DNA from: Bugula neritina
Lineage: Eukaryota > Animalia > Bryozoa
Reading direction: 5' to 3'
DNA: 64,000 nt
Assembly: GCA_964035545.1 (NCBI GenBank)
Contig: OZ037772.1
Span: forward strand, 4,964,233 to 5,028,232
Shown: positions 18,532 to 64,000 of the stretch, in pieces
Numbering within the stretch: the first letter of the stretch is position 1
Layout of the letters: every line of letters starts with the position of its first letter
Position numbers and translations under genes: made by a program
The notes under the pieces: model-generated
Database searches by the model: none
What the model was told of the DNA's origin: nothing
The model's input: only the letters and a program-made list of their open reading frames with translations

Positions 18532-21422
18532 CAGCTTTCTGTCTATAACTTTGCAAAAAAATTGAAAATTGAAATTTCCAAAAAAGTTGCTCTGGGGAAC
18601 AAATAGATCTACAACATAGTTTTTAAATTTTGACTCTACACAATTAGGTGAGATTATTTTACTAGTACTGAATTCTTATATGATTACAATGCAAACCTCA
18701 GCAAGGCAGTTGCAGCTACAAGGTTGCCCTTAACTATCCTGTGCAGGGTTGTTCAGACCATTTACACCATTTACAATGTAAAAAAATACTTGTAAATTTT
18801 GTTGCTTCAAACAAGTTGTAGGATAATGCAGCAATAACCTCTGAAGCGTAAAACTTTTAAGAATAACGTATTTAAATGTGAAGCAGTAGGCCTAACTTAT
18901 AACAGTAATTAGCTCAAGTAAAATAGGAATTGCTTTAAAATTATTCAGAGAGCTATTATTGAACAGAGTTTCTCTTTTAAATTTTCTTCCAAGATTATAC
19001 TATGCTTAAGTGCACGTACAATACTTTGACTGTCTAAGTCAGGCTGTAGAACATTTATATATAAAATTATTCTGCTCGGTACATAAATTGTAGAAGGAAA
19101 AAAACTTACTGTAATTAATGCTTGATACCTACATGTGCTATAAGACATGTGCAGTCTGTAATAGTTATTAGGACATCATTGTGTAATGATTAATAGGAGT
19201 TTGGCTTTAAGTAACTTAAAAAAACCTGATGCTGTAGCCACAAGCTCAAACTGAAATTGCCAATTTGTGACCTTCACATTGAAATATTCCACTTCTTTAG
19301 CCCTTGCTCTGAAAAGCTTGGACACTCCTGATCTAAGCCCTAAGGTACTTTATGACTTTCCAAGACTGACTTTGGCAAAAAATTGTTTAGCTTTACATAA
19401 TGGCCCTCTAGATATTCAAGTTAGTTAAAAGATAGTTGTCAACAAACTATTTTTGTTTAAATATAGTAAGCTTAACCTAAACTTTAAAGGCATTCTACTA
19501 CACATTTAAAAATTACGCAAACACTAAGTTTTGACGTTGAATGTTGCAATTGTTGTTTAATAGGGAAAAATTATTCAGGGATTACCCTAGTTTTATCAGA
19601 CTAACTACCATTATTTTGGTTTTCTATTTTTTTATTGCTATTATTAAATGTAGCTTATGTATTTAAAATTACTGATAATTTCTAGAATTGCTTCTCCTGT
19701 GATTATCTCGTGACAAAAACCAAATGCATATTGTTTTTCTCATATAACTGAGTTGTATAAGTTCTATATATATAGCTAGTTTTAAAAGTATGACTTATTC
19801 TTTTTATTAACTTTAAGAAATATCTTTTGTTACATTTTTAGAAGATTGAGATTAAGATAAGAATCCTATAGCAGCCACAATGTGAAGTAGGTGCAGTAAT
19901 GGAGATATTGAAAACCACATATAAGAATTTACTATACAACATAAACTATACAACCATCAAAGTCTAACAATTCTACAAAGCATTAGGAAATACTAACTGC
20001 TCTGTCTAACACTGTCCACCAATACAAAACACTAGTTAGTCCTTGTCTAACAGTTGTATCCTTAGCTTTCTACACTTCAAAATATGTTGGTACTCAGTAG
20101 GGCTCATCTAACAAAAGCTAAGAGCTTCTAACAAAATGATATTAATGAGGAATTCTTTGTCAAAATCTCCATTTCTGCACTTAACTGCACAACATTCTGG
20201 TATAACTTGTTTCACTCCTAGACTGATGCTTATGAATGAAGAATGGCTAACTAAAGCTAGACACACACCCAGCATTTGTTATTACTTTTGGTGTCATTGC
20301 AGTTATCGAATCAGATTTGATAAATGGGTGGAGCTTAGTAGTGTGACCCAAATAGACTAGCATATACTCAACTATTGTGATGTGTACACAAATACTAGTG
20401 AGTCAGAATCAGGCGCAAAAGCAAGACAGTAATAGGGGTATGAGAGAGAATAATAAGCATAAGAGAGTGAATAATGTCTATAACAGAGCAAATAATAGGG
20501 GTATGAGAGTGCATAATGGAGGTATGGTATTGAATAATGAGCATAAAAGGAGAAGAAATATGGGTATGGGAATGAATAATGACAGTGTGAGACCAAATAA
20601 TAGACCTAAGAGCACAAATAATAAGGGTATGAGAGCAAATGATAGCCCAATGAGAGCGTTTTGTGAGCGTATAAGAGAGAATAATGGTTAGGTTCTTTAT
20701 TATAAGCATATGAGATGCAATATTTAGCAGATTTTTGATCATTTGGCACTTCATACTTTGGACCCTCGATCACTAAACATTAGCCTATGTATTATATTAT
20801 AACTTGTTGGTCATAGCTTTTCTCCTAGTTTTCCTGTTTGGCATAGGAGAAGACAGCGTGACTGGTATAGACTGTGGAACTACTCTCCAATCAGCTTAAA
20901 TATAGACCTGACCCCATTCTCTCACATTTCTGACTACCCATTTGGTTGATTACATAATATCCATGTGATGCAGTAATTGCCAACATACAAAATAGACCCA
21001 CAAACTATAGTTCGAAAAACTATAATAATATTTGTGACCCTCAAAAGCATAACGGATGAACTTATTTTTGAACCTAAATATGAATTATAAGAATAAAAAA
21101 ATTACCATTTAAATGTTTCTTTTTACATACATATGTTTGAAAACATGAAGCCTGCAGTAGTTATGGAAACTATGCAATGATTCATAAGAATTTAGAATGA
21201 AGTAATTTGAAATAATTGGCGTTGGCCCCAAGCTCAAGCTGAAGTTTATAATATGTGACCCTCACCATGAAATACTCTGTTTCATAGGCCTCACTATGAA
21301 AAGGTAAGAAAGCCCTGGTCTAATACATGAGCTTTCTACTGGTGTAGCACAGTTGATGTGCACAGCCATAATCTACTACACTATTACTAAATGATGTCTT
21401 AACTAGTATATGTTTATTATAG

Positions 21423-21563
21423 CATGTCTAATCTGAAGAATCTAGAGACTCTTTTTATGTCGGGCAATAACTTCAGTGAAGGATTACCTGATGCAGTCAC
21501 ACTAATGACATCTCTAAGGGTGTTGCATATTAATCAGTTTAAACTGCCAACTCTACCTCAAAA
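21423..21563 (+). CDS. LRR cassette exon 1 (141 bp, phase 2-2): MSNLKNLETLFMSGNNFSEGLPDAVTLMTSLRVLHINQFKLPTLPQ
   Basis: tatag acceptor, gttagt donor, two LxxLxLxxNxL-type repeats. Confidence 0.9.
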
Positions 21564-21977
21564 GTTAGTAAACGATACTTTAAGTAAATTGGTCATAGAC
21601 CTTTTTCATCTATAGTAGACGGTGCCTATAGGATTTGCCTGTATTTTTCTATAACTAGATTTGTTAAAATTCCTCAAATTTATTGCATTGTTGCAAAATT
21701 TTATATAATATGCAAATAAATATATGCTAACAAAGACATGCTACATATATATAATTACCATGACATCTACTCATGAAAGGTAGAACCCATGCCATAATAT
21801 TTTAATTTCCTATGCTTGAAATGAGTAAAAGTTGGTAAATTCAGTTTATGAGCCTTTTTTCTGAAAGATATACAGCCTAAGCTTCATGATGTAATATATC
21901 CTACTTTACCTAGCATCACAAAAGTAGTTATTTTGTATTATATATTTTGTATTGATATATTTTACTGTCTGCTATAG

Positions 21978-22118
21978 CATGTCTAACTTGAAGAATCTGG
22001 AGACTCTTTTTATGCAAGAAAATAACTTCAGTGAAGGATTACCTGATGTAGTCACATCAATGACATCTCTAAGAGAGTTGAATATGAAGAACTGTAAACT
22101 ACCAACTCTACCTGAAAG
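21978..22118 (+). CDS. LRR cassette exon 2 (FMQE / NMKN)
   Basis: 141 bp, tatag / gtttgt, open frame. Confidence 0.9.
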
Positions 22119-22838
22119 GTTTGTAAAAACAACAACTATATAAAATACAAATGAAATGTTTCTATCTAGGATTTTGCATGTCTGCCCTTTTCTAGACTTG
22201 TCAAATACTTTGCGAAAATTTCTCAAATCTATTAAGTACAAAATCTTGCTTTAATCATCACATAAAATAAGCAAATGATTATACACTAAAAAAGACATGC
22301 TATGTATAATAATCATTATAACATATGAGGTTAATTGGAATATCTTATTTGTAAGAAACTTTACAATGTCTTGCTTTCCTATGCTTGAAACCAGTAAAAG
22401 GTAGTAAGTTGAGTTTATTAGCTTTTTCTTGAAAAATATACAGCGTACACTTTATTATAAAATATCCTGCAGACTAAAATCAGACTTTGATCTGCCAATA
22501 TAATGTATAATCGATATTTAAATAAGTCATACAGTCTTTTGTTATACGATAAGTAGCAATAAACTTTAAAGTTTTAGAAACAATTATTCTGCATTATGAA
22601 GTATGAAACGAAAATGAATTATTTTCAAAAAACTACCAGTAGTGATAGAAAATATTGTAGTAAATTTCTCAATTCACTATAATGTGTGGGTCTGCTTATG
22701 TAAAGCTATTTCACCAGGTTTACAATGATAAGAGTTTATTTGCTGCGAATTATACACAAGTAAAAGTTACTACCACTAAATTAAACGATTACATAACACA
22801 GAGTAATCAACACACTACTATTCAATAACAAGTCCCAA

Positions 22839-23593
22839 CGCAGGATAGTTAAGGGCAACCTTTTAGCTGCAACTGCCTTGCTGAGATTTGCATTTGTAAT
22901 CATATAAGAATTCAGTACCAGTAAAATAAAATCTCACCTAATTGTGCTAGAGTCAAAATTTAAAAACTATGTTGTAGATCTTTTTTTTCCCCAGTGCAAG
23001 TTTTTTGGAAATTTCAATTTTCATTTTTTTTGCAAAGTTATAGACAAAAAACTGTTCAATTTTGGCCAATTTTGCCTGAAAAGCTGACTTTTCAGTTCCA
23101 GTAAAATATCTCAGCAGCAAAAGATGATATCTGAATAAAAATTGCACTGCTAGAATCCAGAGATATTTCTCCAGTGCAAGTTTTTCTTTTCTAATAACTT
23201 TGCTAGATTGCTCATAAAGTGGTGATTTATACACTGAAAATGCCATGTTTTTTCATAAGAAACTAGCAGCGCGCAGCACTTCACGCTTTAATGAGCACGA
23301 AAGGGATGAGAAGATATTGGCGAGTACATAATAATTACAGGCTTGCTAGCTGGCAGGCTAATATGAATAGCTCGCTTTGTACTTTGTTTATGTAGCACCT
23401 GTAATAGAATGTTGATAGATAACGCAGCCCTAATGAAGGTTGCTGCTTATTGGTTGTAGGTTATTCTTAGGCTAAACAATTACAAGTAGGCAACACGCAC
23501 GCCACCCGCAGAGCAATATTATTCAAGAACCTGAACTACATTTTGAGAGAAATTTAAGATATTCTTAGTGAGGATGCCCTTAACTATCCTGTG
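22839..23593 (-). mobile_element. CAC-TIR element copy 2 (complete, 755 bp)
   Basis: CGCAGGATAGTTAAGGGCA ... TGCCCTTAACTATCCTGTG; reverse complement of copy 1; no TSD because LTR lies on one side and pol on the other. Confidence 0.85.
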
Positions 23594-26500
23594 CTGACCG
23601 AAGTTGTCCTTCCTCCCAGCTGTATACACCCGCTTTCCCAACTGTTCTTCAACGTCCGAGCGAGGGGGTCTACCATTCCTACGCTCTATATTTTGGCATT
23701 GCTTACACTCATCTGCCTGGTGGCGGCTGAGTCCATTGGCATCACCGTGCTTCTTACCAACTCGGTGTTCGATCCGATAAGAAAACTCTGCAAGGATTTC
23801 CAGCCAGCGCGCCACTTGGCTTGATGGTTCAGTCCGTCGACACAGCCATATCAGAGACGCATGATTCGTCCGTAGTCCGAACATTTGCCCATACAGATAT
23901 GGTCTGAAGTGTTTGACCGCCTTGAATACTGTCAGGAGATCTCTCCTGGTTGTACAGTAGTTCTTCTCAGGCACCGACAGCACTTTAATATAGTAAGCCA
24001 ACACCACCTCGCGACCATCTTGAACCTGAGACAGCACAGCCCCCACATTGTGGTTACTGGCATCAATATCCAAAATGTACTCCTTCGCTGGGTCAGGATA
24101 CACTGAGATGGGTGCTTCCACCAGGCGATCCTTCAGTTGGTCAAATGCCTTTTGCTCGGCCTGTGTCCACTGCCATCGCACCCCCTTTGCTGTCAACCGA
24201 TTTAACGGTTGTGCAATTCCTGCGAAGTCCGGTATGTACTGACGATAGTACCCTACCAGTCCCAGGAATGCCCGCAATTAAGGGAGGTCGACAGGAACAG
24301 CCCAGTCCCTCACGGCCTGTACCTTCTCGGGGTCGGTGGCGACCCCATCTCGACCAACAGCATGGCCCAGGTACCTAACCTCGCGTTGCAGTAACGCACA
24401 CTTAGAGGGCTTGAGCTTCAGACCAGCAGCTCGAAGTCTGTCAAACACCTCCCTTAGCCGACTGAGATGAGTGTCGAATTTGAGGGAGATGACCATGACA
24501 TCATCGAGATAGATGAGCAACGTCTTCCAGTGCAGCCCACTCAGGACCTGCTCCATGAGTCGCTGGAAGGTGGCCGGTGCGGACGTAAGTCCGAATGGCA
24601 GTACCTTCCATTTCCAGAGCCCATGCCGTGTAATAAAACGCGGCCTTGTCCTGTGCTTCAGGACTCAGGGGCACCTGCCAATACTTGCTTAACAAGTCCA
24701 ACGTACTGAAGAACTTGCTACCAGCTAAGGCATTGAGCGACTCGTCAATCCTAGGAAGAGGTTAAGCGTCCTGGATGGTCACGCTGTTCAGCCTGCGATA
24801 ATCATTGCAAAACTTCCAACTCCCATCCTTTTTCCAAACCAGGACGACTGGAGAACTCCAGGCCCCATGGCCTGGCTCAATCAGGTTCCGATTCAGAAGG
24901 TCTTGCACCTGTCGGCTCACTTCCCTTTCCTTCTCAGGACCTAACCGGCGGGTCGGCTGCCGGATAGGCACCAACCCTGCCGCCAGGGGTATTTCATGAC
25001 AGACAGCTTCAGTCAGACCCATGTCATGATCGCCGCAGCTGAACACGTCTTTGTACTCAGAAAGTAGTTGCGCCATCACCAGGCGTTCCCGCTTACTTTC
25101 ACAGCCATCACCGGCATTCCCGCACAACTCTGCTATGTGTTCAGGTACCGGCTCCCTGGCGTCCCTAGTGAGTATCCTACGGGCTTCGTCTGCCGTTTTC
25201 AGCGCGGGCACTACATCCTCTTCCTGCACGGAGTGGAACTTCCCCACTAGTGACCCAGCCGGCAATTCTACCGGCTCCTTGAAAGGATTCACGCACTGGA
25301 CCAGAAACCTGCCCCGCTCATCCAGTCTATTCAGACTGTTAGCGAGCTGGACGCCCCCAGTGCACCTTCCACCACTCCTAAGTCGGAGATTTTTCTACAG
25401 TCCATTCAGAAGCGAACTGTAGCCCGAGAGCGCCCAGGTACAGTACAACGCTGCACCACCTGCACTCCCCCCACCAAGGGTCGACCAGATCGGTCGACAC
25501 AGGCCAGCTCACGCCCGGCCATCATCACTGCCGACTTGTTGAAGTCGATGTGGCACCTGTGTCATTTCAGAAATTGTATGTCCAAGATGGCATCCTCCTT
25601 GAGTTGACTAACAATGAAGGTCTCGCTGATCACCTGATTACGAACTGTACCAGTAGACTCTATTACCCCATAGACAGGAATAAACGACCCGTCCGCCAAT
25701 GTGCCATGCTCCCCTTCATATGGTTCCAGGCTAGCCCTGTCCCTGGCACTGAGTGTGTCAAACAGACGCCGGCTCAGAATGTTTGTGGTACACCCAGTAT
25801 CCAACAGGAAGGTGACAGCTTTTCCGACAAGCTTGCCGGGGAGGAAATAGCTGCCTCCATATGGCTGGGCGCTCACTGAGCGGTTCGTCTCTTGAGGCGA
25901 CACCTCATGTGCATGGAGTTGGGAATGCACCTGCGTTTTTCGTTTGCGAGGGGGTCGTCGACGTTGCGTGGGCAAGCAGGTTACATCTCGGTCTTGCTCG
26001 CACACGGGCGACCGAGTGAATGCTCGGTGCGGCGCTCGTGTGGGCAACCGAGGGAAATCCCTGTCTTGCTCCCACTCGTCGTACACTCCCTCATCAGGCA
26101 AACCTTCAAAGCAGTTTTTGAGTACCCAAGCCGGAGGTTTTGGCGGGCCTTGCGGCCTAACTCTCCTTGGGGCTTATCACTCTGGCAAAAGGCGGCCTGT
26201 CACCTGGTGGGGTTTGGGCCTTGGCCTTTTCCTTGGAGGGGTAAATCAGGGCCCACAGTTGGCAGAATCTACCATTGACCGTTGCCATTTAACTGCCTCC
26301 CTCTACCATGGGGGCAGCTTTGTATGAAGTGCCCGCCACTACCACAGCTGTCGACAACCCTCGGGGTCTCTCGACTTTCGATTGCTGGCATAGCTGCTTG
26401 ATCTCGGCTAGCAGCTCTCGAACCAAGCTTGTGGTCAAGCTAGTTGGCTCTTCAGCTGCCGCCGTGGCGACATGTACAGCTGTCTTCGCCGGCGACGTCG

Positions 26501-27071
26501 ACACGTCGTCGTCTGCTCCGACCTGCTGTATTGTCGTACCAGGCCGGCATACACTGTCGGCTTGGAAATAGGCATTTTCAAGCTTTAGAGCTCTCTTCAT
26601 AGTCTCAGTTGTTAATAGACTGGAGGAATGCATCCAGTGCTAAGCTCTGTCGACTATCAGCAGGCAAGTCGCCATAACCGACTTGTGCCAGTCGTTCGAC
26701 TACGGTCGCATGCTCTTGCAGGTTAGTCTTAAGATTTCTCCTAAGTCCCTGGAGTTGCACGCGAGCATCGAGCTTTTAATGCCTCAAATATGTCACCGAC
26801 ATCCTGGCTTATCTCATAGGGTTTAGCAGGCCCAGTCAGACATAACCGTAGCTGGATCAGAGTAACCCGATTCGGCCATCTGCAAATGGCCGCCATATCA
26901 CTGAATTCAGTGATGAATTGCTCCACATCTTTTTTTTTCTGAGAAGATGGGAGCCCGCAAGTGGTACCTGTCTATAGGCAGCGCTGGGCCGCCTATGTTA
27001 TCCTCCTCCATCGCTACCATCGTCGGCCATCTTCTTTCTACTCCCTGGCTAGGAGCATTTGTATAAGCGTG

Positions 27072-27089
27072 ATCCCACCGCTGCCACCA
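27072..27089 (-). promoter_or_regulatory. Gypsy-2 primer binding site, tRNA-Leu type
   Basis: Plus strand ATCCCACCGCTGCCACCA matches the 3' 18 nt of tRNA-Leu + CCA as recalled; 1 nt from the LTR start at 27091. Confidence 0.88.
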
Positions 27090-27299
27090 CTGTAGTGAAT
27101 TTCTCAATTCACTATAATGTGTGGGTTTGCTTATGTAAAGCTACTTCACCAGGTTTTACAATGATATGAGTTGATTAGCTACGAATCATACAACAAGTAA
27201 AACTACTACACTAAATTAAACGATTACATAACACAGAGCAATCAACACACTACTACTCAATAACAAGTCCCAAGCTGCTCTCCTGGCTAACTACTCCAA

Positions 27300-28061
27300 C
27301 ACAGAATAGTTAAGGGCAACCTTTTAGCTGCAACTGCCTTGCTGAGGTTTGCATTGTAATCATATAAGAATTCAGTACCAGTAAAATAAAATCTCACCTA
27401 ATTGTGCTAGAGTCAAAATTTAAAAACTATGTTGTAGATCTTCTTTTTCCCCAGTGCAACTCTTTTGGAAATTTCAATTTTCATTTTTCTTGCAAAGTTA
27501 TAGACAAAAAACTGCCCAATTTTGCCAGAAAAGCTGACTTTTCAGTACCGGTAAAATATCTCAGCAGCAAAAGATGATATCTGAATAAAAATTGCACTGC
27601 TAGAATCCTGAGATATTTCTCCAGTGCAACTTTTTTTCATTTTCCAATAACTCTGCTAGATTGCCCATAAATTGGTGATTTATACACTGAAAATGCCATA
27701 TTTTTTCATAAGAAACTAGCAGCGCGCAGTGGTTCACGCTTCAATGAGCACTTAGGGATGAGAAGATATTGGCGCATACATGCTAATTATAGGCTTGCTA
27801 GCTGGCAGGCTATTATGAATAGCTCGCTTTGTACTTTGTTTATGTAGCGCCCATAATGGAATGTTGATAGATAACGCAGCCCTAATGAAGGTTGCTGCTC
27901 ATCACAAGATAGTTAAGGGCATCCTCACTAAAAATATCATAAATTTCTATCAAAATGTAGTTTAGGTTCTTGAATAATACTACTCTGCGGGTGGCATGCG
28001 TGTTGCCTACTTGCAATTGCTTAGCCTAAGATCAAACTACAGCCAATCACAGGATAGTTAA
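27300..28061 (-). mobile_element. CAC-TIR element copy 3 with inverted terminal segment (27903-28047) and extra TIR stub (28048-28061)
   Basis: Three TIR starts: CACAGAATAG 27300, CACAAGATAG 27903, CACAGGATAG 28048. Confidence 0.85.
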
Positions 28062-28806
28062 TCTAGGATTTTGCATGCCTGCCTTTTTCTAGACTTGCCG
28101 TATACTTTCTCAAAATGTCTCAAATCTATTATGGACAAAGTCTTGCTATAATTATTAGATAAAATAAGCAAATAAATATACACTAATGAAGACATGCTAT
28201 GTATAATATTCATTATAACATATGTTGTTAATTGAATATATTATTTATAAGAAATTTTACAATGTTTTGATTCCCTAATCTTGAAACCAGTAAAAGTTAG
28301 TAAGTTGAGTAGTTATTAGCTTTTTCTTGCAAAATATACAGCTTCTGCTTTATTATGTAGTATCCTGTGGACTAAAGTGAGACATTGATCTGCCAATGTA
28401 ATGTATAATTGATATTTAAATGAGTCATACAGTATTTTTTCATACTATAAGCAGCAATAAACTTTAAAGTTTTAGAAACAATTAATCTGTATTTTGAAGT
28501 AAGAAATAAAAATGGATTATCTTTAAAAACTACCAGTAACAGTAGAAAATATTGTTATATATACTAATAAAATGTAAATTTTATAACTTGTATTCAACTT
28601 AAGGTCGTGAAAAGAAGAACCCATACAGTATCTTTCACATACATATGTGAGATTTATATAATATAATAATGTCTTTTATTCAAACTTCATTTTCCATTCA
28701 ATGAGATTTATATATCAATAAAAAACTTTACAATAGAATTACATTTCCTTTACTTTAGATGATTGTATTACTATATGATGCCTCAACTGATATATGTTTA
28801 CTATAG

Positions 28807-28947
28807 CATGTCTAATCTGAAGAATCTAGAGACTCTTGATATGTCAAGGAATAAGTTCAGTGAAGGATTACCTGATGTGTTCACATCAATGACGTCTCTA
28901 AGAAAGTTGCATATGCAGAACTGTGAACTACCAACTCTACCTGAGAG
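28807..28947 (+). CDS. LRR cassette exon 3 (DMSR / HMQN)
   Basis: 141 bp, tatag / gtttgt. Confidence 0.9.
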
Positions 28948-29771
28948 GTTTGTAAAAGCAACAATTATATGAAATACAAATGAAATATTTCTATGTAAGA
29001 TTTTGCGTGCCCGCCTTTTTCTAGACTTGTCAAATATTTTGTGAAAATTTCTCAAATATTTTAGGTAGAAAATCTTCCTATAATTATTACATATAACAGG
29101 CAAATAAAAAATAAAGTCATCTTATATGTATAATGATTATTATAGCACATGTGGTTAATTAGAATTAATTGGAATATATTGTTTATAAGAAACTTTACAA
29201 TGTTTTGATTTCACATTTTTGAAACCAGTAAAAGTTAGTGAGTTGAGTTTATGAGCTTCTCCTTGAAAAATATACAGCCTACGCTTTATTATGTAATATC
29301 CTGCAGACTATAAAATGAAACTTTGATCTAGCAATATAATCTGCATATAATTCATATAACTTATAATTGATATTTAAGTAAGTCATACAGTCTTTTGTTA
29401 TACTATAAGCAGTAATAATAAACTTTAAAGCTTTAAAGACAATTATTCTGCAATTTAAAGTATGAAACAAAAATGAATTATTTTCAAAAACTACCAGTAA
29501 CTATAGAAAATTTTATTGTATATACAAATAAAACGCAAATTTTATAACTTGTATTCAACTTAAGGTCTTGAAAAGAAGAACTCATGCAGTATGGTTGACG
29601 CACATATGTGAGATTTATATCTAATAATGTCTTTTATTCCAACTTCATTTTCCATTGAATGAAATTTATGTATCAATAGCAAACTTTATGCTAAAATTAC
29701 ATTTCCTTTGCTTTAGATGTTAGTTGGTTGTATTACTATATGATGCTTCAACTGGTATATGTTTACTATAG

Positions 29772-29912
29772 CATGTCTAATCTGAAGAATCTGGAGACTT
29801 TTGATATGTCAGGGAATAACTTCAGTGAAGGATTACCTGATGTATTCACATCAATGACATCTCTTAGAGAGTTGCATATGCAGAACTGTGAACTACCAAA
29901 TCTACCTGGGAG
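29772..29912 (+). CDS. LRR cassette exon 4 (DMSG / HMQN)
   Basis: 141 bp, tatag / gttagt. Confidence 0.9.
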
Positions 29913-30685
29913 GTTAGTAAGAATGCATTAAATAAAATGTTCATTTGTGTGAAGGGTATAGTTCTGCAATAGAAGTACTTATTTTTTTATTAAAATTGTC
30001 TACAGGTTTTAAAGTTCTACAGTTTTACAAACTTTCAGCATTTCATAAGTGAAATATATTAGGTTCACAATAGAATCACAAGTATCAACTGTGTTACATA
30101 CTTCCCATTGAAAGTGAACCACCGGCTTGCCATGCAGCTGACGCACTAACCATTATACTACAAGGGTAACCCTAACACTCCATGCAACCAGTTATTCTAA
30201 ACTCTGCTGGTCCCCTTACTAGTCATTCAGTTTAGGTTTCCCGGGCCTCTCAACTCTCTTGGTGCACTACAAAAATGCTATACTAAACGTGAAAGAGCTT
30301 GCTAACAATTACACATGGGTCGTTAGGTGATCTCAACACCACACCAAGCTGTTCAAATGTGCATTCAGCTCCCTGCTACCATAAAGCTATTCACCTGCAC
30401 TAACCGTCATGATGTAAGAACTTCAATTACAGGAGGTTCTAATTTTACATGCCTCTCCTTTCAAACGGAAGGATATCACAATTACTAGACATCAAATTTT
30501 TATAAGCGCATTACAGAGATTACTTGATTAGCATGTGAATAAAATCCTAGTTGTATATATTATTTGCTTCACTTGGTCTAATACATGAGCTGCACACTTG
30601 TATGACACAGTAGATGTGCACAGCCATAATCTACTGCAATATTACTATAAATGATGTTTATATTACTATATTATGTTTACTATAG

Positions 30686-30826
30686 CATGTCTAATCTGGA
30701 GAATCTGGAGACTCTTGATATGTCAGAGAATAACTTCAGTGATGGATTACCTAATGTATTCACATCAATGACATATCTAAGAGAGTTGCATGTGAAGAAT
30801 TGTAAACTAGAAACTCTACCTGAGAG
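30686..30826 (+). CDS. LRR cassette exon 5 (DMSE / HVKN)
   Basis: 141 bp, tatag / gtttgt. Confidence 0.9.
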
Positions 30827-31470: not shown

Positions 31471-31611
31471 CATGTCTAATCTGAAGAATCTGGAGATTCT
31501 TTATATGCTAGGGAATAAGTTCAGTGAAGGATTACCTGATGTATTCACATCAATGACATCTCTAAGAAAGTTGGATATTGAGGACTGTGGACTACCAACT
31601 CTAGCTGAGAG
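31471..31611 (+). CDS. LRR cassette exon 6 (YMLG / DIED)
   Basis: 141 bp, tatag / gttagt. Confidence 0.9.
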
Positions 31612-33240: not shown

Positions 33241-33244
33241 AGGT

Positions 33245-38338: not shown

Positions 38339-38340
38339 AT

Positions 38341-51106: not shown

Positions 51107-51247
51107 CATGTCTAATCTGAAGAATCTGGAGACTCTTGATATATCATGGAATAACTTCAGCGAAGGATTACCTGATGTAGTCACATCAATGACATCTCTA
51201 AGAGAAATGAATATTAGTTTCTGTGAACTACTAACTCTACCTGAAAG
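51107..51247 (+). CDS. LRR cassette exon 8 (DISW / NISF)
   Basis: 141 bp, tatag / gttagt. Confidence 0.9.
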
Positions 51248-52517: not shown

Positions 52518-52658
52518 CATGTCTAATCTGAAGAATCTGGAGACTCTCGCGGTATCACGGAATAACTTCAGTGAAGGGTTACCTGATGTAGTCACATCAA
52601 TGACATTACTAAGAGAGTTGAATATTAGTTCCTGTGAACTACAAACTCTACCTGAGTG
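52518..52658 (+). CDS. LRR cassette exon 9 (AVSR / NISS), missed by the ORF track
   Basis: 141 bp, tatag / gttagt; MSNLKNLETLAVSRNNFSEGLPDVVTSMTLLRELNISSCELQTLPE. Confidence 0.9.
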
Positions 52659-53331
52659 GTTAGTGAGAATGTATTAAATAAAATGTTCATTAGTGTGAAG
52701 GATACAATTCTGCATTAGATGCACCTGTTTTTTTAATAAAGTCATCTACATATACTGAAGATTAGCTTGGAAAGTTCTAAAAGCATTTTGACTAGCTTGC
52801 TAGAGTTTCTAAGTGCAATATGTTGGGTTCACAGTAGAATCACAAGTACCAACTGTGTTAAACATTTTCCACTGAGAGTTGACCACCGACTTTTTAGCTG
52901 ACACCTTAACAATTACACTACAATAACTACTGGGTAATCTTAACATCTCATTCAACCAATTCTTTTAAACTCCACTGGCCCCCTTTCTACTCAATAACTA
53001 TTAGGCTTCCCTGACTTCTCATCTCGCTTTGCATACAAACATACTGCATGGCTGGCTATAGCAGTGTGAACAAACGCTGTACAGTTGTCCAATATAACAT
53101 CTCATATCTAATATATAACATGCTAACTTGAACATGTTTGATGTACATTTTTATTAAGTCATCAGATGAATAATAATAAATTTTCATTTTCTTTACTTAA
53201 GGAAAGTTGTCAAATTGTTATAACAATTCTTGATACAGTTATAAAGTCTGTGATTGTCTCCTCTCACCAGAATAGTAGCTAATACAATAATTATAATAGC
53301 AAATGTAACTTGAGATAGGATTACGCTAATG

Positions 53332-55060
53332 CAGTGGTTCCCAACCTTTTTCGGACGATTCCCCCCTTTCATAAATGTTGACTATTAATTTCCCCCCTTT
53401 CGAAGAGCGAAGAGATTTTATGACTTACTCAATAAGAACATATGATCCAATGCAATATAATTATTTTGTTCTATTATATTTGCATATAATATATTTATCA
53501 TAATAGTAATAGTATCGTAACTTTTATGTTATAAAATACAGTGGAGTTCAATTATTAATGTTATGGCTTCATTTGATGCTTTTGTGCCAGCTAGCTTAAG
53601 CCTGGCTCTGTGTTTGACCAGGCCCATCTTAAGTAACTCTGCAGCTTAGGGCAGTTTCTCTTCTCTTTGAATTGATAAGAATCCTACCTCACAGGGATAG
53701 GTGGTGCTGGATGGCACCAAAACTCTGCTTTGTCAGTTATGTGTGGGAATAGTTTGGTTGTTGAAACCCACAATGATTTTAGATAAACTGGTGCATGTAA
53801 AAGTGGCACAGGTAATAATGGCACAAATGGATAAGCAAGTAAAATGGCACACTAATATTAAATTTTTCTAAATTCAAACCCCAAATCCTCCACCCCAAAC
53901 TCTCCACCCCAAGCCCCCAACCTTTGAACCCCAAACCCTCACTTCCTAACTCAAACCCCCAGCCCAAACTCCAGAACCCCAAGTACAAACCAAAGTCCTC
54001 ACCTCAAACCCCTCTTTCGAACTCCAAACCCCCCAATATTGAAAACATGTACCTTTTTTACTTAATTTTCCATTTGTACCATTATTACCTGTACCATTTC
54101 TACTGGACACTACTCACAATACACCAACTAGAGAAGATTTCAAATCACCCTTCATTGCTGAATTGTGAATTAACTCAATAAAATCCTCCTGTAACTTGTC
54201 TGAAAACTGTTCAACAAAGCATTGCAATGGGTCACATGTCAATTTAAAAATCTAGCTCTTTTCTTTGGAAGGTAGCTTAGAGAAATACCGTTAAAACTCC
54301 ATTGAAAGTTTAGAGAGATGCCTAGATTAAGCTTTTTGAAAAATGATCTGGAACAAAAGGTGTTTGATAAAAATGGCACAGGTGAAAATGGCAGAGGTAA
54401 TAATGGCACAAATGGAAAATTAAGTAAAAATAGCACATTTTCAATATTTGCATTTTAGATTTGAGTTGGGGGGTTAGGCGTTCAGAATGGGGGGTTCGAA
54501 GGTTTGGGAAATTTTAACACCAGTGTGCAATTTTTACCTGTGCCATCTTTACCTAAAATCAGAACAGGTTCTTCTCCGGGAAAAGTTCATTGAGTGTGGG
54601 GAAAAACACCATGTTTTTGATAGATGCCACCACTTTGGTGTAACTTTAAACACATTGCTGCTGCTATGACTATGACAAGCAATGATATGATGATTGCTCT
54701 CCTGCATTTTTAGGTTCAGATTGCTTAGCGTAGCAAATATATTTGTTAGGTATGTAGTAAACAGTTCATAGAGATTGACTTGCATGGCTGCTAAAAGTTG
54801 GCCTGTTGGTTTTTGCATATTTTTGACCTCCATTCGAAAAAGAACAGAAAGCACTTTGGGTATAGAGTAATTGATAAATACAAATAGAATTAAACTGAAA
54901 TTGTGGAATATGGTGTGGTTAAATAGATGAGCAAAGATGAAGGTTCATAGATATACATATAGTAATATACATAACTTGCAAGAGCTCAAAAACCGTCAAA
55001 AAATTGCATGAATTTGTCAAAATCCAAATTCCCCCCTAAAATGTCCAAATTCCCCCCCTA
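53332..55060 (-). mobile_element. hAT (Charlie/Buster-like) remnant, right TIR missing
   Basis: Left end CAGTGGTTCCCAACCTTTT; minus-strand TTYPCEVGF (cf. TTYLCExGFS); subterminal AATTCCCCCC repeats at both ends. Confidence 0.7.
53789..54112. mobile_element. Palindromic MITE-like insertion (TGGCACAGGTAATAATGGCACAAATGG arms, AAACCCC-type core); related opposite-orientation copy at ~54358-54560
   Basis: Imperfect inverted arms surround short C-rich heptamer repeats. Confidence 0.6.
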
Positions 55061-55699
55061 GCAAATGTAACTTGAGATATAGGAGTACGCTACTGTGTAT
55101 ACAGGTCTAGTTCAACTTCCCCTTCTGAGCCATCCCCCCTCATATATATGAGTGCATGGAGTAGCTAGTCCTGAGTTCATTCAGGAAGCACATTACATGA
55201 TATATAAATTTAAGCATAAAACAATTCGTAAACGAGCACGAAGAACAGTAAAAACATGCATGAGCATCTGTCCAACATGTCCCCTGCCTACATACTTGTG
55301 ACCCTTAAACCCGTTGTAGATAAACTTATTTTAAACATAAATATAAGTTATAAGAAGAAAAAAATCACTTTTTAAATGTTTTTTTATATAAATATATTAC
55401 AAAACATGGAGCCTGCAAAAATTATGGAAACTTCACTGTGTAATCATTTATAAGAACTTAGAACACAGTAATTTGAAATAACTGATATTGTTGCCCCTGG
55501 CCCAAGCTGAAGTTTAAAATATGTGGATCCCACCATGAAAGGCTCTGTTTTGAAAGCCTTAGCTATGTAGCTATGAAAAGGTAGAAAACCCGTCTAATAT
55601 ATGAGCTGGATACTTGTGTGACACAGTAGATGTGCACAGCCATAATCTACTACAATTTTACTAAATGATGTTTCAATTAGTATATTATGTTTACTATAG

Positions 55700-55840
55700 C
55701 ATTTCTAATCTGAAAAATCTGGAGACTCTTGATATAACAGGGAATAACTTCAGTAAAGGATTACCTGATGTATGGACATCAATGACATCTCTAAGGACGT
55801 TGGATATGAAAAACTGTGAACTACCAACTCTACCTGAGAG
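55700..55840 (+). CDS. LRR cassette exon 10 (DITG / DMKN)
   Basis: 141 bp, tatag / gttggt. Confidence 0.9.
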
Positions 55841-56451
55841 GTTGGTAAAAGCAACTGAATATGAAATACAAATAAACTGTTTCTTTTTATTTAGGATTTT
55901 GCATGGATGTATTCTTCTAGACTTATATTTTTTTATTGCTAAATATCTTGTGAAAATCTCTCAAGTCTGTTGCAATTTTTTGCAATATTATTACATAAAT
56001 ATGCAAATAAATATATGCTAATAAAGCAATGGTATGTATATGAAATTATAACATGTGGTTAAATGGAATATATTATATGTAGCAAACGTTACAACATTTT
56101 AATTTCATATGCTTGAAATGAGTAAATTAGGTAAATTATAAGTTGACTTTATTAGCCTTTTTTTAAAAAATGAAAAGCATAGGTTTCAAAATGTAATATC
56201 CTGTAAACTAAAATCAGACCTTGATTCGGCAATATAATGTATATAATTGATATTTAAATAGGTTATACTGTCTTTTGCTATGCTATAAGCAGTAAAAAAC
56301 TTTAATGAACGTGTTATAAACAAGTAATCTGTATTTTGAAGTATAAAACAAAAACGAATTATTTCAGCAAATTACCTGTAGCTATATATGTTAGATGTTA
56401 GATGGTTGTACTATACTATTTCATATCTCAACTAGTATATGTTTACTATAG

Positions 56452-56592
56452 CATGTCTAATCTTAAGAATCTGGAGACTCTTGATACGTCAGAGAACAAC
56501 TTTATTAGAGGATTACCTGATGTATTCACATCAATTACATCTTTAAGAAATTTGAATATGCGATACTGTGCGCTACCAACTTTACCTGAGAG
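56452..56592 (+). CDS. LRR cassette exon 11 (DTSE / NMRY)
   Basis: 141 bp, tatag / gttagt. Confidence 0.9.
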
Positions 56593-57312
56593 GTTAGTAA
56601 CAGCAACAATTATATATATGAAAGAAAAATAAATCAACTGAATATGAAATACAAATGAACTGTTTCTCTAGGATTTTGCACGCTTGCATTTTCTAGACTC
56701 ATATTTTTTGTTGCTAAATATTTTCTGAAAATTTCTCAAAACTGTTAAACATCTTGCTATTATAGTTAGTATATTACATAAAATACGCAAATAAGTGTAC
56801 AATATTTAAGAGATGGCTGTGTACAATATTATAAAATGTGGTCAACTGGATTTATAGTATATATTAGAAACTTTACAATAGTATAACTTCGTATCCTTGA
56901 AATGGGTAAAAGTTAGCAAGTTGAGTTTATTGGTTTTCTTTCATAGAAAATAATAAACTCACAATTCAATATGTAATATCCTGCAGACTAAAATCAGACT
57001 TTGATCTGGCAATATGATGTATATGATTGATATTTAATTGCCAAATACTTTGTCAAAATTTCTCAAATCTATTAGGTACAAAATCTTGCTATAATTATTA
57101 CATAAGATAATAAGTTATCTAAAATACAAATAAACTGTTTCTCTAGGATTTTGAATGCCTGCATTTTTCTAGGCTATGATATTTTTTGTTGCTAAATATT
57201 TTGTGAAAATTTCTCAAAACTGTTAAAAAATATTGCTATAGTTACTATATTATATAAAATGCGCAAATAAGTGTACAATAATAAGTATGCTGTGTATATA
57301 ATATTAGAAAAT

Positions 57313-57562
57313 GTGACCCAGGCAGTCAGAAAAGCACTTTGTGACAAAATTCACATTTTCAGTTAATGCTTGATTCTTATTTGCCTCTTTATACTGATTG
57401 ATTTGCTGTTTAAATTTTTGAAATCGGACTACTATTATAATAGTGGTCCGATTTCAAAAATTTAAAGTGCAAATCAATCAGTATAAAGAGGCAAATACGA
57501 ATCAAGCATTAACTGAAAATGTGAATTTTGTCACAAAGTGCTTTTCTGACTGCCTGGGTCAC
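57313..57562. mobile_element. 250-bp near-perfect palindromic MITE (Sola1-like target)
   Basis: GTGACCCAGGCAGTCAG...CTGACTGCCTGGGTCAC, ~125-bp arms with no spacer; 4-bp TSD AAAT (AWWT); absent from the paralogous module at ~56835. Confidence 0.85.
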
Positions 57563-58455
57563 AAATGTAGTTAACTGAATTTATATAATATTTTAAAAAC
57601 TTTACAATATTTTAATTCCGTATCCTTAAAATGGGAAAAAGTTAGTAAGCTAAGTTTATGAGCTTTTTCTTGAAAAATATGCAGCCCAAGCTTTATTATG
57701 TATTATCCTGCAGACTAAAATGAGACTTTGATCTGTCATTATAAATTCTTCAACTCTATTATATTGCTGCAAAATTGTATGTAATATACAAGTAAAGATA
57801 TCATGCTATAGAACATAGCCTGCAGTAATTATGGAAGTTCCACTATATGTGATGATTCATATAAGAACTTAGAATGAAGTAATTTGAAAAACTGATTTTC
57901 TGGCCCTTAGTCCAAGCTGAAGTTTATGAAATGAGTAAATTAGGTAAATTACAAGTTGACTTTACTAGCCTTTTCTTGAAAAATAAAAAGTGGAAGTTTT
58001 AAAATGTCATATCCTGCTGACTAAAATCAGACTTTAATCTGGCAATATAATGTATAATTGATATTTAAATAACTCATACAGTCTTTTGTTATACTATAAG
58101 CAGTAACACACTTTAAAGTTTTAGAAACAATTATTCTGTATTTTGAAGTACGACATAAAAGTGAATTATTTTCAAAAATAGCAGTAACGATAGAAAATAT
58201 TATTATATATATACACTAATAAAATTTAAGTTTTATAATTTGTATTCAACTTAAGGTCTTGAAAAAAAGAACTCATGCAGTGTATTTCACACACATATGT
58301 GATATTTATATCTAATAATGTCTTTTATTCAAACTTCATTTTTTATTGGATGAAATTTACAAATCAATAAACAACTTTATGCTAGAACTCCGTTTCCTTT
58401 GCTTTAGATGGTTGTAATACTATATGTTGTCTCAACTGGTATATGTTTACTATAG

Positions 58456-58573
58456 CATGTCTAATCTGAAAAATCTGAAAACTCATTGAAGGATTACCTG
58501 ATGTAGTCACATCAATGACATCTCTAAGAGAAATGAATATTAGTTCCTGTAAACTACTAACTCTACCTGAGAG
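58456..58573 (+). pseudogene. LRR cassette exon 12, defective (118 bp)
   Basis: Net 23 nt missing over the first variable patch; reads MSNLKNLKTH*; donor gttatt lacks +5G. Confidence 0.88.
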
Positions 58574-59828
58574 GTTATTAAATATGTATTAACTAAAATG
58601 TTCATTAGTGTGAAGGATATAATTATGCATTAGATGTACCTATTTTTTATTAAAGTTATCTACATATTCTGAAGTTAGGCTTGGAAATTTCTAGAAGCAT
58701 TTTGACTCGCTTTCTACAGTTTCTAAGTGCAATATGTTGGGTTCACAGCAGAATCACAAGTATTAACTGTGTTAAACATTTTCCACTGAGAGTTGACCAC
58801 CAACTTTTCAGCTGACACTCTAACAATTACACTACAATAACTACTGGGTAATCTTAACATTTCATTCAACCAATTCTTCTGAACTCCACTGGCCCCCTTT
58901 CTACTCAATAACTATTAGGCTTTCCTGGCTTCTCAACTCGATTTGTATACAAACATACTACATGGCTGGCTATAGCAGTGTAAACAAACGCTGTACAGTT
59001 GTCCAATATAACATATCATATATAATATAACATGCTTATTTGAACATGTTTGATGTAAATTTTTAGCAAACTATTAGATGAACAATAATAAGTTTTTTTT
59101 ATTTTCTTTATTTAAGGAAAGTTGTCAAATTGTAATAACAATTCTTGATACAGTTATAAAATCTGTGACGGTCTCCTCCCACCAAAAAAATAACAAATAC
59201 AATCATTATAATAGCAAATGTAACTTGAGATAGGAGTACGCTAGTGTGTATACAGGTCTAGTTCAACTCACCCTTCTGAGCCATCCCCCTTATATATATG
59301 AGTAGAATAGCTAGTCCTGAGTTTATTCAGGAAGCACATTACACTGAATATGGATTATAACATAACATAATTTATAAACGGGCACGAAGAACAGTAAAAA
59401 CATACACAAGCGTCTGTCCAGCAGGTCCCCTGCCTACATACTTGTGTCCCTCAAACACGTTACAGATAAACTTATTTTTAAACATAAATATAAGTTATAA
59501 GAGGAGAAAAATCTTCTCTTAAATGATTTTTTTACATAAATATATTACAAAACATGGAGCCTGCAATATTTATGGAAACTATACACACTGTGTAATAATT
59601 CTTAAGAACTTAGAATAAAGTAATTTGAAATAACTGATAATGTGGCCCATAGCCAATAAGCTGAAGTTCAAAATATGTGGCCCCCGCTATGAAATGCTCT
59701 GTTTTGAAAGCTCTCAGTATTAAAAGGTTGAAAACCTTTGGTCTAATACATGCAGTAGATTTTACCAGCCATAAGCTACTACAATATTACTAAATGATGT
59801 TTCAATTAGTATATTATGTTTACTATAG

Positions 59829-59969
59829 CATGTCTAATCTGGAGAATCTGGAGACTCTTAATATAGCAAGAAATAACTTCAGTGAAGGATTGCCTGATGT
59901 ATTCACATCAATGACATCTCTAAGAAAGTTGCATATGCGGTACTGTAAACTACCAACTCTACCTGAGAG
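59829..59969 (+). CDS. LRR cassette exon 13 (NIAR / HMRY)
   Basis: 141 bp, tatag / gttagt. Confidence 0.9.
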
Positions 59970-60445
59970 GTTAGTAAAAAAAGAAACTTTGTATAAAAGG
60001 CTCATATATAATTTTCATCTATAGCATATGACTCTTATAAGATTCGACTGCATGTATTTTATAACTGCCACTTCTGTTGCTAGATGTTTTGCAATAAAAT
60101 CCTAAACCTATTGAATTGTTTTAAAATTAGATACAGTTTGCAAATAAGTTTATGCTAACAAAGATATACATACATATAAATATCATGAGATGTTATAGTC
60201 ATGGAAAGCATAAGACATGTTACAATATTTTAATTTCTCCCGTTTGAAGTGAGCAAAAGTTAGAGAGTTAAGTTCATTATAAAGTTTTTACTTGGGAAAT
60301 AAACAGTTCAAGCTTCATTGTGTAATATCTTGCAGACTAAAATCAATTGAGTTGAGTTAGCAACATATAATACTAAATAAGTTTTTTGTTATATATATAT
60401 TTTGTATTATATAAGTTGTATTATATAATCTATTGTCTGCTATAG

Positions 60446-60586
60446 CATGTCTAACCTGAAGAATCTGGAGACTCTTGATTTGTCACATAATAACTTCAGT
60501 GTAAGACTACCTGCTGTAGTCACATCAATGACATTACTAAGAGAGTTGAATATTAGTTTCTGTAAACTACCAACTCTACCTGAGAG
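60446..60586 (+). CDS. LRR cassette exon 14 (DLSH / NISF), missed by the ORF track
   Basis: 141 bp, tatag / gttagt; MSNLKNLETLDLSHNNFSVRLPAVVTSMTLLRELNISFCKLPTLPE. Confidence 0.9.
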
Positions 60587-62352
60587 GTTAGTAAAAATCT
60601 ATCAACTAAAATGTTCATTAGTGTGAAGGATCCAATTCTGCATTAAATGCACCTATTTTTTTATTAAAGTTATCTACATACTCTGAAGGTAAGCTTGGAA
60701 CGTTCTAGAAGCATTTTGACTAGCTTTGTAGAGTTTCTAAGTGCAATATGTTGGGTTCACAGCAGAATCACAAGTACCAACTGTGTTAAACATCTTCCAC
60801 TGAGAGTTAACCACCAACTTTTCAGCTGACACTCTAACAATTACACTACAATAACTACTGGGTAATCTTAACATCTCATTCAACCAGCTCTTTTAAACTT
60901 CACTGGCCCCCTTTCTACTCAATAACTATTAGGGTTCCCTGGCTTCTCATCTCGCTTTGCATACAAACATGCTGCATGGCTGGCTATAGCAGTGTGAACA
61001 AACGCTGTACAGTTGTCCAATATAACATCTCATATTTAATTTAACATGCTTACTTGAACATGTTTGATGTAAATTTTTAGTAAACTGTCACATGAACAAT
61101 AATAAATTTTCATTTTCTTTATTTAAGGGAAAATGTCAAATTGTTATAACAATTCTTGATACAGTTATAAAATCTGTGATCGTCCCCTCTCACCAGAATA
61201 ATAGCTAATACAATGATTATAATAGCAAATATAACTTGAGATAAGAGTACGCTACTGTGTATACAGGTCTAGTTCAACTCACCCTTCTGAGCCATCCCCC
61301 TTATATATTTGTGTGGAGTAGCTAGTCCTGAGTTCATCCAGGAAGCGCATTACATGATATATAGATTTAAGCATAAAATAATTCGTAAACGAGCACGAAG
61401 AACAGTAAAAACATGCATGAGGGTCTGTCCAACATGTCCCCTGCCTACATACTTGTGACCCTCCAACGCATTACAGATAAACTTATTTTTAAACATAAAT
61501 TTGAGTTATGAAGAGAGAAAAATCACCTTTTAGATGTTTTTTTATATAAATATAATATTACAAAACATGGAGCCTGCAATAATTATTGAAACTCCACTGT
61601 GTAATGATTCTTAAGAACTTAGAATAAAGTAATTTGAAATAACTGATAATGTGGTCCCTAGCCCAAGGTGAAGTTTAAAATATGTGGCCCTCACCATGGA
61701 ATGCTCTGTTTCAAAAGCCTTAGCTATGAAAAGGTAGGAAACCCTTGGTCTAATACATGAGCTGCCTACTTGTATGACACAGCAGATGTGCACAGCCATA
61801 ATCTACTACAATATTACTAAAGGAGTAAAAACTTATTTATGATTTGACTTTTTTAGCTGTTTCTTGAAAAATAAGAAGCTCAAGCTTCAATATGTCATAT
61901 ACTGCAGACTAAAATCAGACTCTGATCCGGCAATATATAAATTATAATATATGATTCATATTTAATTAAGTCATACAGTATTTTGTTATATTATAAGCTG
62001 TGATAAACTTTACAAATTTAGAAACAACTATAAATCTGCATTTTGAAGTATAAAACAAAAATGGATTATTTTCAAAAACTACCAAAAATGATAGAAAATA
62101 TTGTCGCATATACTAATAAAATATAAATTATATAACTGGTATTCAGCTTAAAGTCTTGAAAAGAAGAACTTATGCAGTATATTTCACACACATATGTGAG
62201 ATTTATATCTAATAATGTCTTTTATTCCAACTTCATTTTTCATTAAATAAAATTTATATATCAATAAAAAACTTTACGCTAGAATTACATTGCTGTAGCT
62301 TAAGATGGTTGTATTACTATATGATGTCTCAACTGGTATATGTTTACTATAG

Positions 62353-62493
62353 CATGTCTAATCTGAAGAATCTGGAGACTCTTGATATGTCACATAATAA
62401 CTTCAGTGAAGGATTACCTGATGTATTCACATCAATGACATCTCTAAGAGAGTTGAATATTAGTTCCTGTGAACTACCAAATCTACCTGGGAG
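62353..62493 (+). CDS. LRR cassette exon 15 (DMSH / NISS)
   Basis: 141 bp, tatag / gttagt. Confidence 0.9.
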
Positions 62494-63258
62494 GTTAGTA
62501 AGAATGTATTAAATAAAATGTTCATTAGTGTGAAGGATATAATTCTTCAATAGAAGTACTTTTTTTTTTATTAAAATTATCTACAGGTTTTAAAGTTCTA
62601 TAGTTTTACAAATTTTCTGCGTTTCAAAAGTGCAATATATTAGGTATTATAGAATCACAAGTACCAACTGTGTTACATACTTCCCATTGAAAGTCAACCA
62701 CCGGCTTGCCAGCTGACGCACTAACTATTACACTACAAGGGTAATCCTAAAACTCCATGCAACCAGTTATTCTAAACTCTGCTGGTTCCCTTACTACTCA
62801 TTCAGTTTAGGCTTCCCGGGCCTCTCAACTCTCTTGGCGTACTACCAAAATGCTATACTAAATGTGAAAGAGTTTGCTAACAATTACACATGGGTCGTTA
62901 GGTAATCTCAACACCACACCAAGCTGTTCACATGTGCATTCAGCTCCCTGCTACCATAAAGCTATTCACGTGCACTAACCGTCATGATGTAAGAACTTCA
63001 ATTACAGAAGGTTCTAATTTTACATGCCCCTCCTTTCAAATGGAAGGATATCACAATTACTAGACATCAAATTTTTATAAGCGCATTACAGAGATTACTT
63101 GATTAGCATGTGAATAAAATCTTAGTTGTATATATTATATGCTTCACTTGGTCTAATACATGAGCTGCCTACTTGTATGACACAGCAGATGTGCACACCC
63201 AAAATCTACTACAATATTACTAAATGATGTTTCAATTACTATATTATGTTTACTATAG

Positions 63259-63399
63259 CATGTCTAATCTGGAGAATCTGGAGACTCTTGATATGTCAGG
63301 GAATAAGTTCAGTGAAGGATTACCTAATGTATTCACATCAATGACATCTCTAAGAACGTTGAATATGCAGATCTGTGAACTACCAACTCTACCTGAGAG
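63259..63399 (+). CDS. LRR cassette exon 16 (DMSG / NMQI)
   Basis: 141 bp, tatag / gttagt; the downstream module runs off the window, so the array probably continues. Confidence 0.9.
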
Positions 63400-64000
63400 G
63401 TTAGTGAAAGCAACTCAATATGAAATACAAATAATATGTTTTTATCTGTAGTACACGATACCCATTTCTTTATACTTAAATTTTTTGCTGTCAGGTAATT
63501 TCTGAAAATTTTTCAAACCAGTGAAATTATTCTTGCCATATTGTATATAATATGCAAATAAATACAAGCCAATAAAAATATTCTATGTAGTATTATGACA
63601 TATGGTTCTAGAATATATGAAAGATGTTACAATATTTTAATCTCCTATATTCCTTAATGCTTCAATTAAGTAAAAGGTAATGAGTTAAGTTCAGTATATA
63701 ATTTTTTTTCAGAAGATATACAGCTTAAGCTCTATTTTATAATATACCTGCAGACTAAAACTAGCCATTGATCTGACAACATAACGTATAATTGATATCT
63801 AAATTATACAGTCTTTTATTAGATACAATAAAAATTGTTAATTTGACAATCTTCAAATTTTAAAATATAACAAAAACAATTTATTTTAGCAAATCTTATG
63901 TAATTATCGAAAAGAAATTATTATTTATATGTGAATAAAATTTTAGTTGTACATCTGATGCTTCACTCAGTTTTGAAAAAAAGCTCATGCTGCAGTACAT

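Follow-up and report, generated by a model that had tools for sequence, protein, structure and literature searches.

Shuffled introns in a leucine-rich repeat exon array of Bugula neritina: probable homology-limited exchange on a two-exon repeat

Introduction

In plant resistance genes such as those of the Cf-4/9 and RPP5 types, the regions that code for leucine-rich repeats (LRRs) are changed by unequal crossing-over within the gene and by gene conversion. In the ribonuclease inhibitor and in vertebrate NLR genes, the repeats are found in two-LRR exons of 28 + 29 residues, which form stable and old arrays. Tandem arrays organised as higher-order repeats are known from alpha satellite and from the two-exon LPA kringle IV-2 unit. 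A further example is provided by the LRR genes of Tetrahymena, which carry arrays of exons of exactly 90 bp, and for which unequal crossing-over between different exons, within a gene or between sister genes, has been proposed (Xiong et al. 2019, PLoS Biol, PMC6564038). Here, we analyse a stretch of 64,000 nucleotides from the bryozoan Bugula neritina (hereafter, the window), which maps to contig 8 at 4,964,233-5,028,232 and holds an array of two-LRR exons, the putative arm of one very large LRR-Roc-caspase gene, whose introns are built from a few recurrent classes of sequence.

A preliminary description of the window had sorted the sequences next to each exon into classes, and had proposed that introns are passed on as modules whereas exchange occurs preferentially inside the exons, giving chimeric LRR pairs. 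We follow up that proposal below. Our literature searches, on higher-order repeats of exon arrays and on bryozoan ROCO-caspase genes, returned nothing relevant.

Flank classes and linkage in the exon array

By BLAST and nhmmer, exactly 16 copies of one exon were located between position 21423 and the end of the window (Table 1). Fifteen of the 16 are 141 bp long, and exon 12 is reduced to 118 bp through a 23-bp deletion. The array runs on for six exons past the window, which makes 22 exons in the gene, 20 of them of exactly 141 bp. GT..AG borders, phase 1-1 and a single orientation are true of all the exons, and a serine codon (AG/C or AG/T) is split at the borders, with one base at the exon start and two at the exon end. 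The 47 residues of an exon make two LRRs of 23 + 24 residues, which were matched by the Pfam profiles LRR_1, LRR_4 and LRR_8 in searches made exon by exon.

Three 5' flank classes (A, B and C) and three 3' flank classes (X, Y and Z) had been described, and all the assignments, as listed by exon in Table 1, were reproduced by reading the flanks by eye and by clustering 100-110 bp of flank at a 30% threshold (at 0.40, all classes merged). Four flanks were singletons at the 30% threshold (C of exon 2, Y of exon 11 and both Z), and were still placed through the motifs in common given in the preliminary description or through BLAST homology. The near-fixed pairing claimed for the two ends of an intron fits 13 of the 15 introns of the window (X-A in 5/6, Y-B in 6/7 and Z-C in 2/2), with a mutual information of 0.97 bit and a permutation p of 3e-4. 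The companion claim, that pairing across exons is nearly free, agrees with the non-significant 0.26 bit (p=0.44) of the window, but does not hold over 47 units, composed of the exons of the window, the six beyond it and those of a paralogous locus on the same contig. In this larger set, 11 of the 15 units with an A flank carry Y on the other side and 17 of the 27 with a B flank carry X, so that A-Y and B-X together make up 28/47 (p=0.0045). The across-exon pairing becomes significant there because a two-exon higher-order repeat, hidden in the first description, underlies the array. When association was examined site by site, exon positions 10 and 14 tracked the 5' flank class and positions 112-114 weakly tracked the 3' class, most exon positions being uncoupled from either flank.

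This higher-order repeat has the form A-exon-Y..B-exon-X..A, measures about 1.83 kb and contains two exons. A clean A-Y / B-X alternation is followed by exons 15-22 and by exons 3-9 of the paralog, and copies of the two-exon unit are 93-95% identical across 2.1-2.5 kb. Off-register combinations comprise B-Y (exons 3, 6, 11 and 19), A-X (exon 9) and those with the array-head letters C and Z. Introns of the same class (XA, YB or ZC) are homologous end to end, not at the flanks alone; ZC and YB introns have an old core in common, and the last 341 bp of intron 13 show 85.6% identity to the sequence that immediately precedes exon 1 of a paralog array. We read the intron letters as old and diverged paralogous introns.

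Distance matrices of 140-bp segments correlate at 0.61-0.71 for neighbouring flank segments and at 0.53-0.60 across whole introns; the correlation drops to 0.14 when the 5' flank of an exon is compared with its 3' flank, at a distance of 171 bp, and exon halves correlate at 0.17-0.26 with their own flank and at 0.23 with one another. By bootstrap, 0.57 (0.34-0.74) across the intron compares with 0.13 (-0.01-0.33) across the exon (P=0.007), which supports the proposed inheritance of introns as linked modules, with linkage lost across the exon. Within single class pairs, at about 455 bp centre-to-centre, the Spearman coefficients are 0.79 and 0.63 for introns versus 0.34 and 0.40 for exons. The flank trees inferred by maximum likelihood for both sides point the same way, as they conflict more strongly across exons (log-likelihood differences of 85-393) than across introns (42-231).

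Where can these junctions be placed? A and B flanks are alignable over their last ~45 nt and X and Y flanks over their first ~10 nt, so that, together with the exon, a block of about 196 bp is common to all units. In a copying model, each unit was painted on the other 46, and only well-supported donor switches were counted, loose settings being noisy for the old, diverged units. Of these switches, 46-48% fall in the 196-bp block, which represents 23% of the length; the downstream intron takes 44-45% within its first 340 bp, and the upstream intron 8-11% within its last 305 bp. The proposal that exchange is preferentially exonic is thus sustained as an excess of about 2-fold in the exon block, but introns hold over half of the junctions, and the simplest cause of the apparent preference is that the intron classes have no homology with each other. 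Among 32 ends of tracts with an identity >=97%, 8 lie in exons, versus 15% expected by length. We also observe an asymmetry, in that the last 305 bp of an intron are almost never parted from the start of the next exon, and the first ~130 bp switch often.

Individual exons illustrate these exchanges. Exons 19 and 22 have in common a B flank and 22 initial nt of their own, followed by the body of exons 16 and 18, which are identical; a Y intron comes after exon 19 and an X intron after exon 22, and the two units diverge only in the 3' flank. Exon 22, with its A-Y body set between B and X flanks, is therefore a clear chimera of the kind that had been anticipated. Conversely, exon 16 differs from paralog exon 6 at 13 exon positions, although their flanks are 1-2% apart. 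The largest recent tract, of 956 bp, has both of its ends in introns (at +69 and at +118 of the next intron).

The two exceptions to the intron pairing, introns 6 and 14, are not intronic crossovers. Intron 14 follows an X1A intron to 36 nt before its end (61819/61820) and then a YB intron from about +350, and is the result of a ~530-bp deletion that took out an A-Y exon; the same structure exists in the paralog (1766 vs 1765 bp). Intron 6 is a composite, in which YB 1-717 is followed by XA fragments, by YB 122-429 and by a C flank, and no exon remains between the pieces.

Homology as the probable limit on exchange

Exact matches between XA and YB introns extend to 9-13 bp at most, a length expected by chance. 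Neighbouring exon blocks, in contrast, have exact matches of 18-73 bp (median 27) and a mean identity of 85.5%, and exact matches between like introns reach 15-635 bp (56-635 bp between XA introns).

We assign a probability of about 0.72 to a history of homology-limited germline exchange on a two-exon repeat in the arm of an LRR-Roc-caspase gene. The array would first have been built as a repeat of A flank, alpha exon, Y..B intron, beta exon and X..A intron, and would later have been rearranged by homology-dependent unequal crossing-over together with short-tract gene conversion. Given a two-exon repeat, every one-step misalignment sets unlike introns opposite each other and, since neighbouring units carry intron classes that do not align, an out-of-register exchange would be resolved only in the ~196-bp block. 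It would produce reordered but intact introns, hybrid exons (B-Y and A-X) and exon bodies moved between intron contexts, the transplants of exon bodies needing short-tract conversion in addition. In-register exchange between like units could be resolved anywhere, intronic ends included, and non-homologous deletions and transposon insertions would have given rise to the chimeric and oversized introns. Such a limit would account for intact shuffled introns, hybrid exons and intronic tract ends with no special hotspot, and we infer that lack of homology, and not an exon hotspot or selection, is behind the enrichment. The exchange events themselves would be meiotic and germline. No new mechanism is revealed here, and the pattern is tidy but expected.

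Several points weigh against this explanation. Flank trees reject each other within introns too (approximately unbiased test, p<0.001), and exchange is therefore not limited to exons. The donor switches of the copying model are non-independent events, and exon variation clusters in two stretches (positions 32-43 and 96-126) that correspond to the exposed x residues of LxxLxLxxN, where homoplasy may inflate the exon switches. Within the 141-bp exons, the pairwise homoplasy index (PHI) test gives a weak signal of recombination (p=0.035-0.92), so that interior exon breakpoints rest on examples and not on statistics. The lower linkage across the exon persists in comparisons within one class, made for B-X only, which a pure homology limit predicts incompletely, and given this residual excess a real preference, or selection on recombinants, may still contribute. 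The reading frame is another concern: exon 19 (L009:2005-2146), beyond the window, has one extra base and exon 12 lacks its 23 bp, so that the frame is broken unless each of them is skipped, and this gene copy may be decaying or relying on exon skipping. Lastly, the timing, direction and germline nature of the events are inferred.

Alternative explanations

Exons could instead be true recombination hotspots, or selection could keep the recombinants, exchange being aimed at coding sequence to provide a recognition receptor with new LRR pairs. The junction excess of the exon block fits such a proposal, as do the lower linkage across exons at equal spacing, even in one class pair, the clustering of variation at the exposed positions, and exon bodies that diverge or are replaced between flanks 1-6% apart, as in exon 16 and paralog exon 6. 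Against it stand the intronic majority of the junctions, the intronic ends of the largest recent tract and the weak PHI signal within exons, and missing homology between intron classes already predicts an enrichment, all of which makes a hotspot or selection unlikely in our view. A related idea, which we regard as speculative and doubtful, is that the alternating non-alignable introns act as a recombination insulator that stops one-step misaligned exchange anywhere outside the coding block, channelling exchange in this receptor-like family into new LRR-pair combinations, and that they are kept for a faster germline diversification of the binding face.

It is quite improbable that there are no exon junctions at all, and that the order of a multi-exon ancestral block was simply inherited by copying it whole. 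Both the clear two-exon repeat and the blocks in common with the paralog, including the intron with the deletion (1766/1765 bp), would be expected from such copying, but the off-register B-Y and A-X exons and the conflicting flank trees would not, and neither would exon 22, with an A-Y body between B and X flanks, nor exon 19, which differs from it only in the 3' flank.

We find it equally hard to sustain that the intron modules are functional signals, either a Dscam-like splicing code, by which cassette exons would be used combinatorially or in mutual exclusion, or guides for a somatic assembly of cassettes like that of the variable lymphocyte receptors (VLRs). The symmetric phase of all exons implies that the frame is kept by any subset, and gene function would require skipping both frame-breaking exons. 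However, every exon has ordinary GT..AG borders inside one co-oriented gene, and the conservation of the introns, at 88-99% across their whole length, fits recent duplication. In a coarse test made on DNA only, RNA complementarity of intron ends and across exons gave duplex energies no better than those of shuffled controls (z from -2.1 to 0.04); as for VLR-like traits, none was seen, all cassettes being in-gene, co-oriented, in-frame exons with GT..AG borders. An assembly artefact in a repetitive region, which the ~0.9-kb units up to 99.6-100% identical along 956 bp might suggest, is scarcely credible when most copies are 5-30% different, unique transposon inserts fix the order, the same structures occur at the paralogous locus and the contig measures 13.3 Mb.

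The gene, its paralogs and inserted elements

The window is AT-rich (about 30% GC), with transposon islands that are GC-rich. Downstream of the array there is a gap filled with transposons, followed by an exon of 716 codons (L011:745-2892) with LRRs and a Roc GTPase domain (Pfam Roc, 30.8 bits for a cut-off of 27, E=3.8e-7). No Pfam match to a COR domain was obtained at E<=0.01, about 480 residues coming after Roc in the same exon; no profile or fold search aimed at COR was made. Two caspase exons come next, each matching PF00656 (Peptidase_C14) at about 40 bits, with the SHG and QAC motifs (catalytic His and Cys) legible in their translations. We thus predict that the array is the LRR arm of one very large LRR-Roc-caspase gene. 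The regions before exon 1 and before the paralog arrays, searched for a 5' coding exon, gave transposon sequence only. A candidate first exon ending in ATGAAAAG/gt at 21296 was rejected: the site lies inside sequence homologous to ordinary X1A introns, and is therefore no evidence for a first exon.

Table 1. Exons and introns of the LRR array in the window, and its identical tract (window positions)
Feature	Position	Strand	Description
Exon 1	21423..21563	+	LRR pair, flanks A-Z
Intron 1	21564..21977	+	Class Z..C; core distantly related to YB introns
Exon 2	21978..22118	+	Flanks C-Y
Intron 2	22119..28806	+	Class Y..B, enlarged by degenerate Gypsy-like element
Exon 3	28807..28947	+	Flanks B-Y, off two-exon register
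Intron 3	28948..29771	+	Class Y..B
Exon 4	29772..29912	+	Flanks B-X, canonical beta type
Intron 4	29913..30685	+	Class X..A
Exon 5	30686..30826	+	Flanks A-Y, canonical alpha type
Intron 5	30827..31470	+	Class Y..B
Exon 6	31471..31611	+	Flanks B-Y
Intron 6	31612..34018	+	Y..C exception, composite
Exon 7	34019..34159	+	Flanks C-Y
Intron 7	34160..51106	+	Class Y..B, about 16 kb inserted at 34911-50850
Exon 8	51107..51247	+	Flanks B-X, subtypes B1, X1
Intron 8	51248..52517	+	Class X..A, long X1 subtype, 1270 bp
Exon 9	52518..52658	+	Flanks A-X, off register
Intron 9	52659..55699	+	Class X..A (X1), 1.7-kb insert
Exon 10	55700..55840	+	Flanks A-Y
Intron 10	55841..56451	+	Class Y..B
Exon 11	56452..56592	+	Flanks B-Y
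Intron 11	56593..58455	+	Class Y..B; partial YB duplications inside
Exon 12	58456..58573	+	Flanks B-X; 118 bp, internal 23-bp deletion
Intron 12	58574..59828	+	Class X..A (X1)
Exon 13	59829..59969	+	Flanks A-Z
Intron 13	59970..60445	+	Class Z..C
Exon 14	60446..60586	+	Flanks C-X
Intron 14	60587..62352	+	X..B exception, exon-removing deletion
Exon 15	62353..62493	+	Flanks B-X; copying-model mosaic, several donors
Intron 15	62494..63258	+	Class X..A, canonical 765 bp
Exon 16	63259..63399	+	Flanks A-Y; identical to exon 18; 4 differences from exon 22
Intron 16	63400..64000	+	Class Y..B, 781 bp, extends beyond window end
Identical tract	62562..63517	+	956 bp, 99.6% identity to next two-exon unit (extended 64388-65343)

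The same flank letters recur in paralogous arrays located 110-180 kb upstream on the same contig. The number of exons varies from array to array, with 22 in this gene, 11 and about 14 in those paralogs, and 5-9 in arrays of contig 1. YB-like introns and B flanks are present also in these distant contig 1 paralogs, and XA introns are confined to this subfamily. The C flank heads both paralog arrays (contig 8: 4806302 and 4848357) and occurs internally three times here (21978, 34019 and 60446), so that the 22-exon array resembles three array heads fused in tandem. The contig 1 arrays (L021-L028, 35.22-35.49 Mb) have intron alphabets of their own with the same grammar, in which short classes of intron (~200-260 bp) alternate with long ones (~870-1190 bp); one of these arrays is monomeric.

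As for the inserted elements, the Gypsy-like sequence of intron 2 retains protease, reverse transcriptase (RT) and RNase H fragments on the minus strand (23519-26633), and is bracketed by direct repeats of ~615 bp (22835-23447 / 27296-27899) that are 92% identical. The insert of intron 7 contains AT and AC microsatellites and an open reading frame of 399 codons (38572-39771, plus strand), for which there was no Pfam match. Upstream of the array, a long terminal repeat (LTR) retrotransposon occupies 11936-18528 on the minus strand, with LTRs at 11936-12229 and 18235-18528 that are 97.6% identical; it has Pfam matches of protease, RT, RNase H and integrase type with several broken frames, and is nested in another repeat, which it splits into halves at 11286-11815 and 18536-18743.

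Comparison with known systems

Neighbouring introns of unrelated classes mean that each exchange leaves a visible scar, and crossovers, short exon-body conversions, exon-removing deletions and in-register conversions can be told apart within one locus. The array offers an unusually legible history of a repeat-built receptor arm, and a model for sensor-surface variation in the LRR-Roc-caspase genes of this genome. A prediction follows, namely that junctions track the available homology.

As in plant resistance genes, exchange in LRR-coding DNA alters the number of repeats and makes chimeric ones in clustered receptors of the recognition type; unlike the plant LRR regions, which are mostly single large exons, here each repeat pair has its own exon, so that the introns record the history. 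The bryozoan gene resembles the ribonuclease inhibitor and NLR genes in having one symmetric exon per LRR pair and in its growth by exon duplication, but its repeats are of 23 + 24 residues and exchange among them would be recent and ongoing. With alpha satellite and LPA kringle IV-2 it has in common a unit of several monomers amplified in register, with hybrid monomers arising from out-of-register exchange, although the monomers are here exon-plus-intron units of a coding gene, in which only the exon part is common to all. LRR modules joined through short homology within LRR-coding sequence are also a feature of the lamprey VLRs, which are assembled somatically from non-spliceable flanking cassettes, in contrast to the ordinary spliced exons of the germline gene described here, for which nothing points to somatic change.

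The arrays of Tetrahymena (PMC6564038) are similar in their long tandem series of LRR exons of equal length and the same phase separated by related introns, in exon numbers that differ between paralogs, and in the transposons that adjoin the repeat units. Unlike them, the array of B. neritina has 141-bp exons with two LRRs, phase 1 introns and an animal host, and belongs to a gene that runs on into Roc and caspase exons. The two also differ in the two-exon higher-order repeat found here, with its non-alignable intron classes, which makes it possible to localise the junctions.

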